The notes beneath the pieces are model-generated. The model was not told the origin of the DNA and searched no databases. It was given only the letters and a program-made list of their open reading frames with translations. Source: Blastocladiella emersonii ATCC 22665 (lineage: Eukaryota; Fungi; Blastocladiomycota). Taken from it: 64,000 nucleotides of DNA. A program made the translations under genes and the position numbers. Shown piece by piece: positions 1,182 to 13,499 of the stretch. Location of the stretch: the NCBI GenBank assembly GCA_025594325.1, contig JANHCV010000001.1, positions 3,038,001 to 3,102,000 on the forward strand, read 5' to 3'. Numbering within the stretch: position 1 is the first letter of the stretch; each line of letters opens with the position of its first letter.

Positions 1182-1549
1182 CGACCCTGCTCCACCCTCG
1201 CCACTGCGGCTGCACTACCCGCAACTGCCAGCAACGACAGCGGCATCCCCGACACCAGCACCAGCAGCAACCTGCAGTGCGCCCCGCACCACAACCCGGC
1301 CGGCTTCCCTCCCTCCTTCTTCGACGGCTCCGCTGCTCCGCCGCACCACCAACGCCTCCACCACGGCCACGGCCACCCCCACGACCTCTCGCCGCCGACC
1401 GGCCCCGTGATCGGCCCGGCTGATCGGTCCCTCCATCCTTCGGCCATCGCCCCGCAGTCGCCGTCGTACCCGTACAGGCCCTCGGCTCCGCCTGCCTCGG
1501 CGCACCCGCAGCACCTGCACGCCCACGCTCCCTGGTCCGCCAATCTGCC

Positions 1550-1585
<36 letters not shown>

Positions 1586-4345
1586 CCACGGCCACGGGCA
1601 GTACCAGCACCACCCGTACTACCGCCGCCCCCATCCCGCGCACGGCCCTGCCAACAACGACGACCTCGACGATCTCGACGACGCCGACGACCCCATGTCC
1701 ATCCCGTCCATGCCCGCCCCGCCGCTCGGCGCCGCCGGCTCCTCGGGCAAGCCCGCGCGCGACCTCGCCGGCTCCAGCGCGCAGCTCAGCTCCTTCCGCG
1801 GCGGTTCCCCTCGCCTCGCGTCGCCCTCGGCCTACGCCGCCGGCCCTTCTTCCTCGTCGGCCATCGCCGTCGACCACCACGGCGCCCACCACCACCACTT
1901 CCACCAGCACCCACAGCAGCACCACGCCGACCCGCACCACCATGGCCACCACCATGACCATGGCCACGGCCACGGCCAAGACCACGCCCACGACGCGCAC
2001 CGCCAGCCCATGGTCCCCGTGCGCGGCCCGCCGCCCGGCGCCCTGCCGCCGCCGCCCGAGGCCTTTGCCGACCCGGGCGACGTGAACGAGGTCATCTTCC
2101 GCCTCGAGGACACGGTCCACCAGCTCGCCAGCATGGGTCTCGCCATGGTGCCCCCGCCGCACCTCGGCTCGCTCACCCAGGGCCTGTTCCGCGCCCTCGA
2201 CAACACGTGGCAGGTCTACCACACGCTCGCCGAGTGGTGGGTCTGCGTTGAGCGCCACGCCGGCCGCCAGGGCCTCGTCCTGCCCCGCCCCGCCGGCCAG
2301 CCCGACGGCAACGCCGAGGACGGCGGGTCGCCCGCCCCGCTCGGCGCCTCGCCTGTGCCCGAGTCGGCGCCGGCACCACCAGCGTCAGCCCCCGTCCCCG
2401 AGAACATGGACGTGACCATGGACGAGGCAGCGCCTGCGCCCACGCCCGCGCCCGCGCCCGCGTCCGAGCCGGCCTCCGCCTCAGCTGCTCCGCCTGCGCG
2501 CGCCGGATCCGCTGTCGCCCCTCACCTCGTCCACTCGACCGAGAGCACGCCCGCCCCCGCCCCCGCCCCCGTCAACGGCTACCCCGACGGTACCCGCAGC
2601 GCCCCGCCACGGCCGCTCGAGCAGCCTACGCGGCCGCAGCAGCAGCAGCAGCAGCAGCAGCAGTTTGACGCGCTCCGCCACGAGCCCTCGCCCGCTCCCG
2701 CACCGGCTCGCGCGCTCCGTCCCAACGGTGAGCCTGCCCTGCCCCCACCTCATTCCTCGTCCGCTGCGCCGGCATCGACGGGCCGCGACCCCTCGGCTGG
2801 CCCGCGCCCGCCCACGGCCGACGAGTACCCCGTCAGCATCTTCTCGGTCCGCCAGGCCTCGTCGCAGCAGCAGCAGCAGCCCCAGCAGGCCTCGCAGCAG
2901 TTCGGCCCCGGCCCCGGCCCGTCGCCGATGCCGCCCCGCGGCCCGTCGGGTCCCGCCGACCGCGGCTTCTACCCGCCCCCGCCGGGTAGCACTGGCGCCA
3001 ACGGCGGCATGCCGCCCTCGCGCCCGCCGCCGCCGCCCGCGCACTTTGACTTTGACGCCGACGACGTCGAGGACGACCACCAGTACCCGTACGCCGACGC
3101 GCCCATGTACGACGCGCGCCGGCCCGGCCCGCCACCGGGCGCCCAGCGGTACCCTGGAGGCCCGCCGCCGCCGCCGCCGGGTCCCGGACGCGACTTCCAT
3201 CCCGACGCCATGGGCCCGAGCCCGCCGCAGCACCACTACGGCCCGCCTCCGCACTCGCACCCGGCCGGCCGCCCGCACTACGGCAACCACCCGTCCATGC
3301 ACTCGCCCGAGCCCCCGCTCCCGCACCACCTGCGCGGCGGGAACCAGTACTACAGCGGTCCGCCCTCGTCGTCGTCGATCGGCGGCCCGCCCCCGCCCCC
3401 ACCCGCCGGCATGCGCCACGGCCCTCCGCCTCCGCAGCAGCAGCAGCACCGCGGCGGCCACCATGCCCCGCCGCCCCCGCCCATGATGAACGGCGGCCAG
3501 GCCCACCCGTACCCGCCACCGCAGCCACAGCAACATCAGCCGGCCCACCATGGTCACCACCACGGCCCGCCCCCGCCGCCCGTGTCCCACGGCTACGGTC
3601 CTCGCCCGCCCATGCACGCGCAGCCACCGCCGCAGCAGCACCAGCACCCGCTCGCGCACGGCGGCCCTGTCGGCGGCATGATGGACCCGCACCTCAACCC
3701 GTACCCGTACGGCCACGGCGCGACGCCCGACGGCGCGCGCATCACCCAGGACGGCTACGTGTGGGAGGACGCGCGTATGATGGCGCGGCTGCCCAAGAAG
3801 CGCTCGGTACGCTCTCGTCGCGCAGTTCGATGTGGACCTGGTTGATGCCGACGAACTCCCGTTCTAGCGCAAGTCGGCCGGCCCCGCGTTCGGCCGGTGC
3901 CTCAGCTGCAACGCGACCGAGACGCCCGAGTGGCGCCGTGGTCCGCAGGGCAAGGGTACGCCGGACTTTCGACTCTCTCGTCGATCATTTCAACTGAGCA
4001 CCAACTGACGCGTTGCCTCCTCCCGCTTCTGTAGCCTCGCTGTGCAACGCGTGCGGTCTCCACTGGGCCAAGCTCCGCCGCCGCGCCAAGGCCAACCAGG
4101 CCGCGGCCGCCGCTGCCGCTGCTGCCGCCGCCAACGGCGGTTCCACCACAGCCACGGCCACGGCCACGGCTGCGGCGTCGGGCAGCAACAGCGCCACAAC
4201 CACGGCCAGCTCGTCGACGGCCGCGCTCGCGCCCGGCACCGCGCCCGGCACCATTGACGAGGAGGCCGAGGACGACGACGACGACGACCGCAGCGAGTAC
4301 GACGCGCCACAAGGCGCCGCGGCGCAGCAGCCGCCCCCGTCGTAG
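1182..4345 (+). CDS. GATA zinc-finger transcription factor (single C-x2-C-x18-C-x2-C finger) with a long Pro/Gln/His-rich disordered N-terminus; 5' end uncertain
   Basis: Spliced exons (..3806, 3868-3955, 4035-4345; introns 3807-3867 and 3956-4034, GT-AG) give [48 protein letters not shown]. The frame is open from an acceptor at 1181 (branch GCTAAC about 1149); the first in-frame ATG is at 1695. Confidence 0.85.
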
Positions 4346-4606: not shown

Positions 4607-6497
4607 CTACGCGCGCGTGGGCGACGCGGCCGGGGACGCGGCGGACGTGGTCGGGCTCGCGGGCGCGGTGTTGCCGGCGCCGCGCTGCTTGCGCGGGAAC
4701 ACGACGATACGCCCGTCGTCCATCTTCTTCTCGACGGACTTGATGACGCCGACGGCGATGGTGTGCCTGTGGTCGCGGAGGGCGAAGCGGCCGAGCGGCG
4801 GGCACTCGGAGAAGGGCTCGACGCACAGGGGCTTGGACGGGACCAGACGGACGACGGCCGCGTCGCCCGGCTTGAGCGAGCGCGGGTGCTCCTCGATCAC
4901 CTGCCCGTTGCGCCGGTCGACCTTGGCCAGCAGGTCCGTGATGCGCACGGGCACGTGCGCCGTGTGGATGTCGATGATGGGCGTGTACCCGGGCGCGATC
5001 GAGGGCACCGCGTGGTCGACCATGACCACGAGCGACGCCGTGAACGCCACGGCCTCGAACGCCTGCGTGTCGACCGAGGTCGTCGCGTCCGACGCAATGC
5101 ACCCGCGCCGCACGTCGCGCAGCGACACGTTCGACACGCCGAACCCGACGCTGTCGCCCGGGTGCGCCTCGTGCGGCAGCCGCGCGGGCGTCGAGGCGCC
5201 CGACGCCGAGGCTGTTGGTGGCGCGGCGGCGGAGGAGGAAGAGGACGAAGATGAGAGCGCAGCCGCAGCAGCAGCAGCGCCCGAAGACGACGCGGCGCCG
5301 CCCGTCTCGACCGAGGTGACGGTACCCGTGGCGCCGCCGGGGGCGAAGCGGACCTGCATGCCGACGCGCAGGACGCCGGCCTCGACGCGGCCGACGGGCA
5401 TGGTGCCGACGGAGGAGACCTTGTACACGTCCTGGACCGTGATGCGCAGGGGCTTGTCGGCGAGGCGGCGCGGCGGGTCGATGGCGTCAATGGCCTGGAT
5501 CAGCGTGGTCCCCGACTTGTCGCCGGCCTTGGACTCGCGGCGCCACCCGGCAAACCACGGCATGTGCTCCGAGGGAGCGAGCAGGTTGTCGCCCGTGGCG
5601 CCCGACACGGGGACGAAGGGGACCGTCTTGATGTTGTAGCCGAGACGGCGCAGCATGGCCGAGGTGTCGGCGCACACGGCGTGGAACCGGTCGGCCGACC
5701 ACGCGACCTGGTCCATCTTGTTGACGGCCACGATCAGCTGCTTGACGCCGAGCGTGAAGGCGAGCATGGCGTGCTGGATCGTCTCGCCGCCGGCGCCGCT
5801 GGGCGCGGGCGTGGCGGCCGGGTCCTGGTCGTCGCTGGCGTCGTCGGTCGGGAACGGGACCTTGTACGCGGGATCGCGCGCAGCAGCAGCATCGCTGTCG
5901 GCGGATGGCGCGTCCACGTCCATGTCCCCCGACGTCTCCGCCGCGGCGGGCGAGGAGGGCGCGGTCACGGCGGTGCCCATGCCGCGGGCAAACTCAGCGG
6001 GGACGGCCGAGACAAAGAGGATGGCAATGTCGGCGCGCGAGGCGCCCGTGATGAGGTTGTGGACGAAATCGCGGTGGCCGGGCACGTCAATCACGTTGAC
6101 GAGGTACTTTTGCGACGCGAACTTGGCCGCGTCCGGGTGCACGTCGGTCGGGTGGCCCTGCTCGCGCGCGGCCTTGACGCGGTCCATGAGCCACGCGTAC
6201 TGGAAGTGCGGCGGCGCCGTGGGCGGGGTCGCCGACGCGGTCGTCGAGTGCAGCGCGGCCGACGCGGCCTGCTCAAACGCCGCCAGCGTCGCGGCATCGA
6301 GCAGGCCCGACTTGTACACGAGGTGGCCCGTCGCGGTCGACTTGCCCGCGTCCTGCGTGCCGATGACGACCACCGACAGCGGCTGCTTGGCGGGGTCGGC
6401 GGTGGGCGAGCTCCTGGATGAGGCAGACGGCGTGAGTGGCGGCGGCGACAGAGGACGCGTCGATCGCGGCGGTTCCCGCGCACGGGCAAGCTTACAT
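4607..6497 (-). CDS. Divergent eEF1A (EF-1alpha)-like translational GTPase paralog
   Basis: VVVIGTQDAGKSTATGHLVY, DVPGHRDF, NKMD, KPLRITVQDVYKVSSVGTMPVGRVEAG and KPLCVEPFSECPPLGRFALRD align with eEF1A domains I-III. Start codon is AT(6497-6496)|intron 6495-6414|G. Confidence 0.85.
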
Positions 6498-7014
6498 GAT
6501 GTGTGGAGGTGCAATGCCGCAAGTGGTGGCGGCAGCGGGGACGTTGTTGGTGGCGTAGCGAGAGAGAGGGTGTGGAGAGGAGAGCAGAGTTGGTCGCGGC
6601 GGCGAGTCGCGTCGTTGTTGCGCCCCGCCGGAACAAGCCGCGACCGTTGCTCCCAGCGCCGACGCAGCGGAGCGACCTTTCCGGCGGAAGCCGACGCGAT
6701 TCCGGAAGGGGCGTAGCGCTGCTCGTTCGGTTACGCTTACGCGGGTGATGGTGGCGCGGCGCGCGGGCCCAGCCAGACACGTTCGCGGCCGTGTCGCGTG
6801 GTGATGATCTCATGCTCGCGCGGCTGGCACACGGCCATCCGTCACATCACCGCGGCCATCATCCGCCGGCTCGGCGACGCGTCAAGAGGCCGGATCGAAA
6901 GGACAGGAGAACGTGTTCATGAAGGGGGTACAGGACGCGTGCTCATCATCGATACACAACACAACTCGTTCGACGCCTGATCTGCAGCGCGCGACACGGC
7001 GACCGACACGGCGG

Positions 7015-7365
7015 CTACTCAACGGCCGGGTCCGAGGCGTGGCGCAGCTGCACGTTGCCGACGCGCAGGCCCTGGGCCGTGGTCTCGACGCGGGCCGCGG
7101 CGCCGCGCGACTCGCCGATGCCCTCGGCCTGGCGCACCACCTCGGCCTCGTGCTGGAAGTGCTCGCGCACCTCGGGCTCGCGCTGCTCGCGGTCGCGCCG
7201 CTCCTGGTCCTCGGCCGAGTCGAGCGTCTCCTGCCAGTCCTGCTTGTGCGCCGGCTCGCCCTGCGCCTGCGGCTGCAGCTGGATCCCGCCCACGGCCGAC
7301 TGCGCCGCGTGCGTGCGGCCCGACTGCGGCACCTTGGTCGTCTTCTTGGGGATGTTGTCGCTCAT
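7015..7365 (-). CDS. Small (116 aa) hydrophilic, charged hypothetical protein
   Basis: ATG in good context (ccaagATGagc), coding-like GC3 bias, divergent from RPL22; no family recognised. Confidence 0.55.
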   Translation of the reverse strand: MSDNIPKKTTKVPQSGRTHAAQSAVGGIQLQPQAQGEPAHKQDWQETLDSAEDQERRDREQREPEVREHFQHEAEVVRQAEGIGESRGAAARVETTAQGLRVGNVQLRHASDPAVE

Positions 7366-7794: not shown

Positions 7795-8145
7795 ATGGCC
7801 CCCGCTACCAAGATCTACAAGGTGACGCTCGACTGCGCCCAGGCCACCGAGGACAAGATCTTCGACGCCGCCGCCTTCGAGAAGTACGTGCACGACCGCT
7901 TCAAGGTCAACGGCCGCACCAACAACCTCGGCGAGGCGGTCAAGATCACCCGTGTCGGCGAGTCCAAGATCGTCATCACCTCGACGGTCCCCTACTCGAA
8001 GCGCTACGTCAAGTACCTGACCAAGCGCTTCCTCAAGAAGTACCAGCTCCGCGACTGGCTCCGTGTCGTCGCCTCGTCCAAGGACGCGTACCAGCTCCGC
8101 TACTTCAACGTCGACCAGGCCGCCGAGGGTGCCGACGAGGAGTAA
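7795..8145 (+). CDS. RPL22: 60S ribosomal protein eL22 (L22e)
   Basis: MAPATKIYKVTLDCAQATEDKIFDAAAFEKYVHDRFKVNGRTNNLG...YSKRYVKYLTKRFLKKYQLRDWLRVVAS...YQLRYF, typical eL22; aaaaATG context; coding region has no intron. Confidence 0.97.
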   Translation: MAPATKIYKVTLDCAQATEDKIFDAAAFEKYVHDRFKVNGRTNNLGEAVKITRVGESKIVITSTVPYSKRYVKYLTKRFLKKYQLRDWLRVVASSKDAYQLRYFNVDQAAEGADEE

Positions 8146-8682
8146 GATCTTAGTGCCGAACCTGCTCGCCCTCCCCTCCCGCCCCCACCCTCCCCTCCCT
8201 TCGCCCGCCTCGCGCCGCCTCCTGCAGCCGAGCGCGACGAATAGAATGGACCGCACGGGCGTGACGAGAACGAGCCCTTTTCAAAAAATCACAATCTCCT
8301 CCGCTTCGGCTCCTCCGCGCGCGCTTCCCTCCGTGGGGGCCGCAACGAGGCAGACGGTGTCCGCCCGAGCATTCACTTGCCCGGGCACCATGGTGTTGCT
8401 GTGTGGTCGTCCGTGCGCCTCCGAGCTGTCGGGGCGCCGGGCTCCGCCGTCGCGCTGTGTGCCGTGACGCTGTTGGGCTCGTCGCCAGGATCTCTCGCTT
8501 GTCAGGGTCGTGAGGTTCGCTGGGGTCGATCCCTTCGGGTCGTTGTGCCGGCAGTCAGGTCACCTCGCACACATGTTGCTGATTTATTGCTCGTCCGCGC
8601 TCGTCTCCGGTCTCCGCCCTCGAATTCGCCATCGGCGCGCTAGCCCATGCATCACCCTCACCGAACGTCAGCGTAAACCACC

Positions 8683-11901: not shown

Positions 11902-13499
11902 CTTCGTCGCGCAGCGGCTCGATCATTTCGGACGGCCCTGGCTCTTCGCGCAGCGGGTCGGTCATTTCGGGCGATGCTGTTTCGTCGCGCAGCGGTTCCA
12001 TCGTCTCGGACGGCCGTGGCTCATCTCGCAGCGGCTCGGTCATTTCGGGCGACGACGAGCTCGAGCCGCCGCGCTCGGGCGAGGAGTACAGCAGCGACTA
12101 CTCGGACGAGGACGACGCGGCGCCCACCGCCGCGCAGCACGCGGTGCCCAGTGGGCAGTACCTCCGCGCCGGCGACCAGCTCCGCTCCACCACGCAGCAG
12201 CGGCAGCCACCCGCTTCCGCTTCCACCGCCGCCGCCATGTCGCAGATCCCGCGGTACGGCGGGCGCCCGACGATGCTCCGCGCGCGGCCCGACGTGGTCG
12301 ACGTGTCGGATTCCGACGAGGAAGGCGACTACGACGACGATGAAGACGACGCGTCGCTCCCGCCACCGCCGCCCGCGCCCGCTGCGTACCGCTCGCCGCC
12401 CGTGGCCAAGCCGAACGAGGTTATCTCGCTGCTCAGCAGCGACGAGGACGAGGACGATGATGCGCCCGCCACGGGCCCATCCGGCGGCTCCGAGGCCGAG
12501 TACTCGGACGAGGAAGTGGAGGAGGAAGACGGCGAGCTCTCGCCTCCGCCACGCCCGGCGCCGGTCCACACCGAGCAGATTGTCCTGACCGACAGCGACG
12601 ACGAGCTGGAGCAGCAGCCGGCTCCTGGTCCCGTTGCGGGCGAGCAGGTCGACGGCGACGAGTCGGAGGAGTCGTGGTGGTCGGGCGAGGAGGAAGCCGA
12701 GGAGGAGGAGGAGGCCGAGCCCATCATGCTGCCGCCGCAACCTGTCGCGCGGCCAGCCGCGGGCAAGACGGTCCGCGCTGCGATGGTCGCCGGCAAGGCG
12801 CCGCGGTCTGCCACCGCCACGCCCGCGCTCGCGCCCATCGACGATTTCGGGTCCGAGTCCAACTACAGCCGCAGCAGCGGCGCCGAGGCCATGGAGTACG
12901 ACAGCGAGGAGGAGGAGGACGAGGAGGACGAGGACGAGGAGGACGAGGACGAGGAGGACGAGATCGAGGAGGACGAGATCGACGACGATGCGGCCAGCGA
13001 CATGTCCACCGACACGGTCCTCGCGCCGCCGTCCCCCGCGGCCGCTGCCGTCGCGACCACCCCGAAACCACGCGCCGCGTCGCCGCCGCCGCAGTCCGCG
13101 TCGCCCAAGTGGATCCCGCCATGGACGCAGCCCGGGTACTCGCCGACGCGCGGGACCAAGCGGCGCCGGCTGCTGTTCGCGTCGGGCGTCGACGTGGACG
13201 CGTGGTCTGCGGCATCGCCCTCCGCCGCCGCGGCTCCCGCACCAATGGCCGCGACGCTCACGGGGTCCGGGTTCGGGTTCGGCTCGATCATGCCCGCTGC
13301 CGCTGTCGAGGAGGCGACGGAGGCCGAGTCGCTCGTGCCGGCCGGGACGAAGCGCAGCGCGGCCGAGGCCGGGCTCGACGACCAGCAGGACGGCGAAGGC
13401 GGCGAGCAGGCCGAGGGCGAGCAGCCGTCGTTCCTGGGCTTGCTGTTCCGCAAGCTCGTTTCGGCACTGCGGCCACGCGCGCGACGCGGGCTGATCTGA
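8683..13499 (+). CDS. Large (about 1580 aa) intrinsically disordered protein: basic/SP-rich N-half, acidic C-half with SIM-like motifs
   Basis: Exon 1 8683-8877, phase-0 intron 8878-8948, exon 2 8949-13499 in the frame of the 1522-aa ORF; low complexity, no folded domain recognised. Confidence 0.8.

Follow-up and report, generated by a model that had tools for sequence, protein, structure and literature searches.

The blastoclad Blastocladiella emersonii ATCC 22665 (assembly GCA_025594325.1), the source of the window analysed here (the whole stretch of DNA, 64,000 nucleotides), encodes a divergent EF-1alpha-type protein that is best read as a vertically inherited, subfunctionalised eEF1A, retained while EFL took over the bulk of aminoacyl-tRNA delivery; we give this reading a probability of roughly 0.65. 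EFL probably does the routine work of elongation in this organism. The occurrence of EF-1alpha and EFL across eukaryotes is patchy, and the usual explanation is an ancestor with both factors and differential loss among its descendants; species that carry both are, to our knowledge, the only present-day examples of the intermediate state. The blastoclad locus places a whole fungal phylum in this dual-factor state, and with both B. emersonii and Allomyces being culturable, the function that an eEF1A retains after its replacement becomes directly testable. Divergent EF-1alpha genes beside EFL are already known elsewhere (Kamikawa et al., 2013; PMC3699394), and the Allomyces copy has been known since 2014 (Atkinson et al., 2014; PMC3938643); what is shown here in addition is that the divergent gene is shared and conserved across Blastocladiomycota.

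Gene structure and public gene models

The divergent eEF1A gene lies on the minus strand of the window, as do all features given with window coordinates below, within a single open reading frame (4607-6514), and runs from a predicted split start codon AT|G (6497-6496) to a TAG stop at 4607-4609, with one 82-nt intron and a product of 602 residues. The intron (6414-6495; GTAAGC...CTCAC...CAG, phase 2), which would interrupt the start codon, is predicted because the ATG at 6497 is directly followed by TAA, so that this start needs the GTAAGC at 6495 as a donor. The bases AT of the start codon would thus be placed at 6496-6497, with an A at position -3, and exon 2 (4607-6413), delimited by the open reading frame and its Pfam domains, supplies the remaining base, residues 2-602 and the stop. 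The gene contains just one GTRAGY donor site, at the start codon, and its in-frame GC3 is 0.94-0.98 downward from 6413 compared with 0.65 upstream. The predicted spliced N-terminus, MSSPTADPAKQPLSVV, corresponds to Allomyces MTTPADISDKLPLSVV, and the first coding exon of the Sorochytrium ortholog also begins in phase 2 without an ATG. Searches, fold prediction and trees were run with exon 2 as the query rather than with the joined spliced model, and the joined start codon of the window gene, together with the annotated or corrected exons of Allomyces and Catenaria, entered only the translation, the dN/dS estimates, the codon counts and the alignments and trees made locally.

The 717-aa GenBank model of the gene was rejected as a chimera, its first 116 residues belonging to a separate small gene (7015-7365) with its own TAG stop, which has a Catenaria homolog in the same position (E 2e-11) and a Sorochytrium homolog in another; no Pfam family was matched by this 116-aa product. 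The name attached to the model, "26S proteasome regulatory subunit 8", was likewise set aside, since the only Pfam domains in the model are those of the EF-Tu family, and the Allomyces Rpt6 gene gave no match to the window. Public models are wrong in four cases, with that of B. emersonii chimeric and misnamed, that of Sorochytrium fused to a phosphatase gene, that of Catenaria carrying a false C-terminus and that of A. macrogynus truncated, and such models would mislead surveys of the species that carry EF-1alpha.

Family assignment and the dual-factor state

Profiles, structure and phylogeny support the assignment of the B. emersonii protein as a three-domain protein of EF-1alpha type, and not as EFL, eRF3 or Hbs1. 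Matches above the cut-offs were found to the Pfam families GTP_EFTU (PF00009, 4.7e-32), GTP_EFTU_D2 (PF03144, 8.8e-09), GTP_EFTU_D3 (PF03143, 4.4e-20) and GTP-eEF1A_C (PF22594, 7e-34). The EF-1alpha equivalog TIGR00483 gave 448.2 bits, below its cut-off of 540.1 (S. pombe eEF1A, 764.6), and 174 of the 276 canonically conserved columns (63%) are kept, with the losses concentrated in switch I. In a phmmer search against the PDB the closest solved relative was yeast eEF1A (E 1.1e-134, 454 bits), compared with 204 bits for Hbs1 (Hbs1L) and 192 bits for eRF3 (eRF3a). The AF2 model has a confident core and disordered insertions, and its best Foldseek matches were to yeast eEF1A (TM 0.88-0.90).

We give next to no credence to the alternative that the protein is a misread member of Hbs1, eRF3, Ski7 or EFL, which for EFL is already refuted. 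Hbs1 and eRF3 do occur in the Foldseek list, at TM ~0.8, as is expected for any superfamily member, but the PDB bit scores speak for eEF1A, the opisthokont EF-1alpha insertion is present, and correction of the chimeric gene model leaves no N-terminal extension. A careful maximum-likelihood tree was built from EF-1alpha and EFL sequences, with the blastoclads represented by B. emersonii, Catenaria, the two Allomyces species and Sorochytrium, and with Hbs1 and eRF3 compared by PDB bit scores instead; in it the split between EF-1alpha and EFL received 100/100, and the B. emersonii protein, which is 35% identical to the organism's own EFL, fell on the EF-1alpha side, within an opisthokont EF-1alpha clade (95/95). 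The five Blastocladiomycota sequences formed a clade (100/100) on branches about 10 times the canonical length, and the path from the fungal node to the B. emersonii protein amounts to ~1.5 changes per site, compared with 0.05-0.2 for canonical proteins. Of the phylogeny that the preliminary description had called for, the part with EF-1alpha and EFL groups the protein with EF-1alpha, and the EF-1alpha-type C-terminus that it had recognised was confirmed by alignment with canonical EF-1alpha and by the coordinates (4733-4834).

The same assembly has a gene for EFL itself (P0243, KAI9168465.1), which lies on a separate 1.74-Mb contig of GCA_025594325.1 and whose product is identical to an earlier EFL record of B. 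emersonii (ABK34893.1), so that the dual EF-1alpha/EFL system suggested beforehand is present in this blastoclad. EFL ESTs have been reported (PMC1550239), and EFL has been reported in most Blastocladiomycota (PMC9457484). A canonical EF-1alpha of B. emersonii was not found in word-based protein searches, which were non-exhaustive and are no proof of absence.

GTP-binding motifs and switch I

The altered motifs named in the preliminary description, namely G1 as GTQDAGKS, switch I as REQGHPTD and a disrupted EMHHE site, agree with both alignment and coordinates, as does the retention of DxPGH and NKMD. In G1 (6338-6361; canonical GHVDSGKS), which was aligned with canonical EF-1alpha, the GxxxxGKS consensus is intact, and the residues altered are the H, V and S that are typical of EF-1alpha; the Val of GHVD is replaced by Gln in B. 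emersonii, Allomyces and Sorochytrium and by Leu in Catenaria. From the EF-Tu/eEF1A literature, we take this Val and the Ile of RGIT to be the hydrophobic-gate positions. The remodelled switch I (6143-6268) has a helix-loop that is 12 residues longer (AASAALHSTTASATPPTAPPH), followed by REQGHPTD in place of RERGITID (6143-6166), with one or two extra residues and with His/Pro at the gate Ile. Nearly all canonically conserved columns at positions 33-82 are changed, and changed differently in each blastoclad, and pLDDT in switch I is low at model residues 63-68 and 86-94. The Thr of RERGITID, which is presumably Mg-coordinating, is possibly kept in B. emersonii (HPTD) if one residue counts as inserted, the alignment being ambiguous there.

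The remaining motifs are better preserved. G3 reads DVPGH (6074-6088) and keeps the His of DxPGH, which we take to be catalytic, with an Ala-to-Val change common to all five aligned blastoclad sequences; G4 is retained as NKMD (5711-5722), and G5 is present as SGATGDN. No full-length ortholog has lost G1 (GxxxxGKS), G3 (DxPGH), G4 (NKMD) or G5. This pattern, including the catalytic His and the possible switch I Thr, would also suit a working general elongation factor that acts in parallel to EFL at a low level or at particular stages (zoospore, germling, sporulation), with the altered motifs as tolerated variation, a reading that we consider unlikely. Against it speaks the variation of switch I, which in each species has its own length and sequence.

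Insertions, domain II pocket and C-terminus

Insertion A (5789-5977), in a G-domain loop after EFARGM, consists of 63 acidic, Ala- and Pro-rich residues, with an in-frame GC3 of 0.90, no splice-donor motif and pLDDT below 50 at model residues 153-206; an insertion is present here in Allomyces too, though a smaller one. The opisthokont-specific EF-1alpha insertion of domain I (GW.KE.KAG...GKT region) is present at 5507-5548, where GWRRESKAGDKSGT aligns to yeast GWEKETKAGVVKGK, and this insertion has served as a criterion for divergent fungal EF-1alpha genes as well (PMC3699394).

In domain II the EMHHE site is replaced (5168-5311) by VETGG (5297-5311) followed by insertion B, so that TGG stands where EMHH would be and of (V)EMHH only the Glu is kept. 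We take EMHH, following the EF-Tu/eEF1A literature, to be the wall of the aminoacyl pocket and the Glu of VE(M) to be the residue that stacks on A76. Insertion B is a 44-residue low-complexity Ala/Ser/Pro loop (GC3 0.73, GC2 0.93, no donor motif; pLDDT below 50 at model residues 372-409), and insertions of differing length occur at its site in Catenaria and Allomyces. All five aligned full-length orthologs have the Glu of VE(M), which speaks for a working factor and, together with the retained nucleotide motifs and catalytic His, would fit an aminoacyl-tRNA carrier acting at a low level, but the pocket wall has given way to disordered loops of 10-44 residues across the orthologs, which speaks against one. 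The possibility that the insertions are unspliced introns was ruled out by the in-frame GC3 of insertion A, by the restriction of GTRAGY donors to the start codon and by orthologous insertions at the same sites.

Domain III is the best-conserved domain, a further point in favour of a working factor. Beyond the EF-1alpha-type C-terminus lies a clade-specific tail (4610-4732), EKKMDDGRIVVFPRK and then a Ser/Pro/Ala-rich end, that is unlike the canonical Lys-rich tail and whose motif is common to B. emersonii, Catenaria (in a read-through ORF), B. britannica, Allomyces and Sorochytrium.

Orthologs, selection and codon usage

Orthologs were found in Catenaria, Allomyces macrogynus, A. javanicus and Sorochytrium, and in part in B. 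britannica, the sole congener, whose ortholog is similarly divergent and 66% identical to that of B. emersonii; reading frames are intact in all six species, B. britannica being partially sequenced. In the window, as in Catenaria and Sorochytrium, RPL22 is the neighbour of the divergent eEF1A gene, and a GATA factor gene adjoins the divergent gene in the window and in Allomyces. Between RPL22 and the divergent gene there is a small ORF in the window and in Catenaria, which in Sorochytrium is found elsewhere within the locus. Synteny, the C-terminal motif and 26 derived residues common to the blastoclad eEF1A clade demonstrate the orthology of these copies independently of the tree. The Sorochytrium copy is mildly changed and lies ~2 kb from EFL, and the Blastocladiella, Catenaria and Allomyces copies are strongly remodelled.

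Strong purifying selection acts on the two Allomyces orthologs. Between A. macrogynus and A. javanicus dN is 0.007-0.009 and dS 0.26-0.54 (omega 0.015-0.036), with 93 differences distributed 11/1/81 over the three codon positions, and the introns of the pair are 74-81% identical. In pairs with B. emersonii synonymous sites are saturated (ML dS >27), and purifying selection on the B. emersonii copy is suggested instead by its intact frame, its in-frame GC3 periodicity and its conservation across the clade. Neutral evolution, which the preliminary description had set against its own proposal, is contradicted on the Allomyces orthologs by these dN/dS values.

The same data bear on whether the gene is a decaying relic whose constraint is fading after replacement by EFL. 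[quoted passage not shown] The remodelled Allomyces copy is under strong constraint rather than in decay, which corrects the published impression.

Strong purifying selection in the Allomyces pair would equally be expected of a working general factor, but the rate of change and the codon usage argue otherwise. Identity among blastoclads is 88-94% for EFL compared with 50-66% for the divergent eEF1A, a protein whose evolution is much more rapid than that of EFL over the same species pairs, and the score below the EF-1alpha equivalog cut-off (TIGR00483) points in the same direction. The share of C at fourfold sites is 0.53-0.56 in the divergent gene, as in the ordinary genes of the window, and 0.72 in EFL and 0.75 in RPL22; the codon usage of the divergent eEF1A is unlike that of either and is not what a highly expressed gene would show, an indirect proxy that would agree with transcription well below EFL.

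Proposed role

On the reading of a subfunctionalised eEF1A, guanine nucleotide binding would be retained, because all full-length orthologs have G1, G3, G4 and G5, and a ribosome-type GTPase trigger is probably still in use, given that neither the catalytic His nor the core of domain II or III has been lost. The role of a general aminoacyl-tRNA carrier, on the other hand, appears to have been lost, as both gate positions are replaced, switch I is free in length and sequence between species, and the EMHH wall has been exchanged for a variable disordered loop. A protein that is no longer a general carrier, yet keeps nucleotide binding and the trigger, would be retained for a narrower GTP-dependent task, which could be to bring some special ligand to the ribosome or could be a non-translational role of eEF1A. 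The earlier proposal, loss of canonical aminoacyl-tRNA delivery and retention of the protein in a moonlighting role, can be called consistent with the sequence, and of the two roles named with it, actin bundling and quality control, neither is singled out by the analysis.

A further reading, which we consider a long shot, is that the Blastocladiomycota eEF1A clade is a nascent, neofunctionalised subfamily of translational GTPases, comparable to the origin of eRF3/Hbs1 from eEF1A, that has kept nucleotide binding and the ribosomal trigger and in which a new ligand would be bound by the rebuilt switch I and pocket of domain II. Such a subfamily is compatible with the strong purifying selection, the conserved clade-specific residues and the new C-terminal motif, likewise conserved, and a link to some trait peculiar to the phylum is conceivable, for example to the inactive ribosomes that zoospores store in the nuclear cap.

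Comparison with known systems

Divergent EF-1alpha genes of dual-factor species have been described in Spizellomyces punctatus, Basidiobolus ranarum, Thalassiosira, Pythium, Goniomonas and Thecamonas, where lower transcription of EF-1alpha was shown (Kamikawa et al., 2013; PMC3699394). As in those cases, the blastoclads combine a long-branched EF-1alpha with a conserved EFL, vertical inheritance is seen, and retention of part of the original function has been proposed; the opisthokont insertion is shared with the fungal cases among them. Unlike in those systems, the blastoclad divergence belongs to another fungal phylum, is clade-wide, is accompanied by a conserved neighbourhood and by purifying selection measured in the Allomyces pair, and in B. 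emersonii includes three large, disordered stretches of inserted sequence, one at switch I, one in the loop of the G domain and one where EMHH would be.

The A. macrogynus eEF1A (P0004) was noted in 2014, when its evolution was said to show an apparent loss of constraint (Atkinson et al., 2014; PMC3938643). It is a direct ortholog with 57% identity to the B. emersonii protein, falls in the same clade and has the same GATA-factor neighbour, and, as opposed to the published description (PMC3938643), the omega of the Allomyces pair represents strong present constraint. Relative to the A. macrogynus copy, the insertions of B. emersonii are much larger and its start codon is predicted to be split.

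Compared with canonical eEF1A (yeast Tef1/Tef2, PDB 1F60; the mammalian protein on the ribosome, 5LZS), the B. emersonii protein has the same three-domain fold, as the TM scores indicate, and keeps the P-loop consensus, G3, G4, G5, the catalytic His and most of domain III. It differs in its 55% identity, as opposed to 78-85% between canonical fungal and animal proteins, and in having the gate Val/Ile and EMHH replaced, switch I remodelled, three insertions, another C-terminal tail and a TIGR00483 score that misses the cut-off. Although by bit scores it falls outside the eRF3 and Hbs1 subfamilies, and a role like theirs or like that of aEF1alpha can be put forward as a hypothesis only, eRF3/Hbs1 and archaeal aEF1alpha-Pelota (PDB 3WXM) provide precedents for an EF-1alpha-type GTPase that brings cargo other than elongator aminoacyl-tRNA to the ribosomal A site.

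Identity and fold of the eEF1A-like protein

The eEF1A-like gene (4607-6497, minus strand) lies in a single long minus-strand ORF (4607-6514) with the complete EF-1alpha domain architecture in Pfam, namely GTP_EFTU (E 4.7e-32), domain 2 (E 8.8e-09), domain 3 (E 4.4e-20) and GTP-eEF1A_C (E 7e-34). The preliminary description had reported altered GTPase motifs on an EF-1alpha framework, and this is borne out by alignment with canonical EF-1alpha: on the minus strand, GHVDSGKS is replaced by GTQDAGKS (6338-6361), which leaves the P-loop consensus GxxxxGKS unbroken, and switch I RERGITID by REQGHPTD (6143-6166); DVPGH (6074-6088) and NKMD (5711-5722) are retained, VETGG followed by a 44-residue Ala/Ser/Pro loop occupies the expected EMHHE site (5168-5311), and the C-terminus is of the EF-1alpha type.

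Two insertions, a 63-residue G-domain loop (insertion A, 5789-5977, minus strand) and the loop at the EMHHE site (insertion B, 5168-5302, minus strand), were considered as introns and this was ruled out. Both are read as coding because GC3 is maintained at 0.90 across A, neither contains a donor motif, orthologs bear insertions of different lengths at both sites in the alignment, and in the AlphaFold2 model both are disordered loops, the rest being a confident eEF1A fold (mean pLDDT 76; core mostly >90). The best Foldseek matches to this model are yeast eEF1A (TM 0.88-0.90).

Yeast eEF1A is also the top solved relative of the protein (E 1.1e-134, 454 bits), with Hbs1L at 204 bits and eRF3a at 192 bits in the same sequence search of solved structures. 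In a maximum-likelihood tree (31 rows, LG+C20+F+G4 PMSF; support as UFBoot/SH-aLRT), EF-1alpha and EFL, its probable replacement in elongation, are split at 100/100, the window protein falls within opisthokont EF-1alpha (95/95), and five blastoclad sequences form one clade (100/100). The curated EF-1alpha equivalog model TIGR00483 gives the protein 448 bits, below the cut-off of 540 (S. pombe eEF1A 765, EFL 396). Identity to its own EFL is 35%, and membership of another subfamily is a negligible prospect.

Gene model and public annotations

There is no in-frame ATG upstream of the P-loop within the window ORF, and the ATG at 6497-6495 runs directly into TAA. The G of that ATG opens GTAAGC, the sole GTRAGY site across the whole gene, and the acceptor would be the CAG at 6416-6414, preceded by CTCAC at a distance of about 20 nt; in-frame GC3 is 0.65 upstream of 6413 and 0.94-0.98 downstream. 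AT|G splicing yields the N-terminus MSSPTADPAKQPLSVV..., parallel to MTTPADISDKLPLSVV... in Allomyces, and the first coding exon of Sorochytrium likewise lacks an ATG, has the same phase and begins just before codon 2. On these grounds the minus-strand gene is predicted to comprise the start-codon bases AT (6497-6496), an 82-nt intron (6495-6414) and exon 2 (6413-4607), and to encode a 602-residue protein. Exon 2 alone was used in database searches, folding and trees; the joining of exons (the window start codon, and the Allomyces and Catenaria exons) was confined to translation, codon statistics, dN/dS and local alignments and trees.

The window protein is 100% identical to the GenBank entry KAI9189706.1 (B. 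emersonii ATCC 22665, 717 aa), whose product name is "26S proteasome regulatory subunit 8". No support was found for this name: the entry contains solely EF-Tu-family Pfam domains, and nothing in the window matches the Allomyces Rpt6 gene. The entry is a chimera, the first 116 residues being a small charged ORF (7015-7365, minus strand) with its own TAG stop. This ORF matches no Pfam family; homologs occur in Catenaria at the same position (L003:4940-5476, E 2e-11), annotated as a separate gene, and elsewhere in the Sorochytrium locus (L004:13352-13531), and it is, from sequence, a real conserved gene.

Models of the orthologs also required correction. In Catenaria (L003:7542-9270), two large annotated introns displace a normal EF-1alpha C-terminus, which is recovered when the locus is read straight through. 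The A. macrogynus model ends within an 85-nt intron (L001:7502-7586) that A. javanicus splices, and so lacks the last intron and exon, and the Sorochytrium eEF1A model is fused with an upstream phosphatase gene. The Sorochytrium EFL model is a fusion as well, joined to a region with a weak zf-primase match.

Orthologs, synteny and EFL

All of the closest proteins belong to Blastocladiomycota, namely Allomyces javanicus, A. macrogynus, Catenaria anguillulae, Sorochytrium milnesiophthora and B. britannica (partial model). A tail motif after KSVEK, (D/K)DG..V..P, is common to all six species and absent from canonical proteins. In Allomyces and Catenaria alike, a phase-1 intron interrupts the opisthokont insertion at KTG|M (L001:6713-6809, L002:6713-6804, L003:6812-6897); the B. 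emersonii gene has none at this codon. The order RPL22, small ORF, eEF1A-like gene is found in both the window and Catenaria, and RPL22 is upstream of eEF1A in Sorochytrium. In the window, RPL22 (7795-8148, plus strand; Ribosomal_L22e, E 1.2e-43) and the small ORF are arranged head to head. A GATA-factor gene (1182-4345, plus strand) adjoins the eEF1A-like gene tail to tail in the window, and also adjoins it in Allomyces in the opposite relative orientation, implying a local inversion. This conserved neighbourhood is evidence of orthology that does not depend on a tree.

The EFL of the dual system suggested in the preliminary description was found as KAI9168465.1, which sits on another contig of this assembly and is identical to the earlier-recorded B. 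emersonii EFL, ABK34893.1. With the Sorochytrium EFL gene as query, EFL was recovered from Allomyces, B. britannica, Rozella, Basidiobolus and B. emersonii ATCC 22665, in agreement with its reported presence in B. emersonii and most Blastocladiomycota (PMC1550239, PMC9457484). In Sorochytrium, EFL lies about 2 kb from the mildly divergent eEF1A and is convergent with it; together with RPL22 the two occupy one 7-kb stretch (L004 5333-12959), making this a dual-factor species with both genes physically linked. A phase-1 EFL intron interrupts the second Gly codon of LFELGG in both B. emersonii (L005:5098-5354, 257 nt) and Sorochytrium (L004 ~12771-12860, ~90 nt).

Divergence and selection

In the tree the window protein lies about 1.5 changes per site from the fungal node, compared with 0.05-0.2 for canonical sequences; Sorochytrium is the least diverged of the blastoclad clade. 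Blastoclad EFLs are 88-94% identical, and eEF1A-like proteins from the same species 50-66%. Among 276 columns each at least 92% conserved in 25 canonical EF-1alphas, Sorochytrium keeps 206, B. emersonii 174, Catenaria 155 and Allomyces 154; the three strongly divergent species all keep 116, have moved to a new shared residue in 26, and have lost 49, which are variable. In switch I (positions 33-82) nearly all conserved columns are affected. C at fourfold-degenerate sites is 72-75% in B. emersonii EFL and RPL22 and 53-56% in the eEF1A-like gene, resembling ordinary window genes, which speaks indirectly against very high expression.

Such divergence could be that of a decaying relic, and the A. 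macrogynus eEF1A has been listed as having apparently lost constraint (Atkinson et al., PMC3938643). However, compared as corrected coding sequences, A. macrogynus and A. javanicus have dN 0.007-0.009, dS 0.26-0.54 and omega 0.015-0.036, with 11 differences at first, 1 at second and 81 at third codon positions; their introns are only 74-81% identical. The Allomyces orthologs are thus under strong purifying selection, and decay is highly improbable. As synonymous sites are saturated in every pair with B. emersonii, constraint on that gene is inferred from its intact frame, codon periodicity and clade-wide conservation.

Proposed role and comparison with known systems

In EF-Tu and eEF1A, the hydrophobic gate above the catalytic His consists of Val from GHVD and Ile from RGIT, the Thr of switch I is a Mg2+ ligand, and the tRNA aminoacyl end sits in a pocket lined by the EMHH strand. 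In the blastoclad clade the gate Val position is Gln (Leu in Catenaria), and the gate Ile has given way to other residues in the three most diverged species and to a conservative Val in Sorochytrium; switch I differs in length and sequence from species to species, and of EMHH the five full-length orthologs retain only the Glu, after which come disordered loops whose length varies. Because the nucleotide-binding motifs and catalytic His are invariant and these other elements are altered, the window protein would still cycle guanine nucleotide, probably with a ribosome-type trigger, and would no longer be a general aminoacyl-tRNA carrier, a role that EFL would fill. Set beside these changes, its persistence as a minor general elongation factor appears unlikely. 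A narrower or moonlighting role is favoured, with a probability of roughly 0.65; candidates, unranked, are delivery of a special ligand, quality control, the cytoskeleton and ribosome storage.

Divergent EF-1alpha genes beside EFL were already known, a 2014 paper had mentioned the Allomyces ortholog, and the B. emersonii protein was in GenBank under a wrong name. What is added here is the clade-wide picture with synteny, the gradation running from Sorochytrium to Allomyces, the measurement of selection, which shows strong constraint in Allomyces as opposed to the reported loss, and the corrected gene models. The mechanism suggested here is in line with the subfunctionalisation that Kamikawa et al. 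put forward (PMC3699394).
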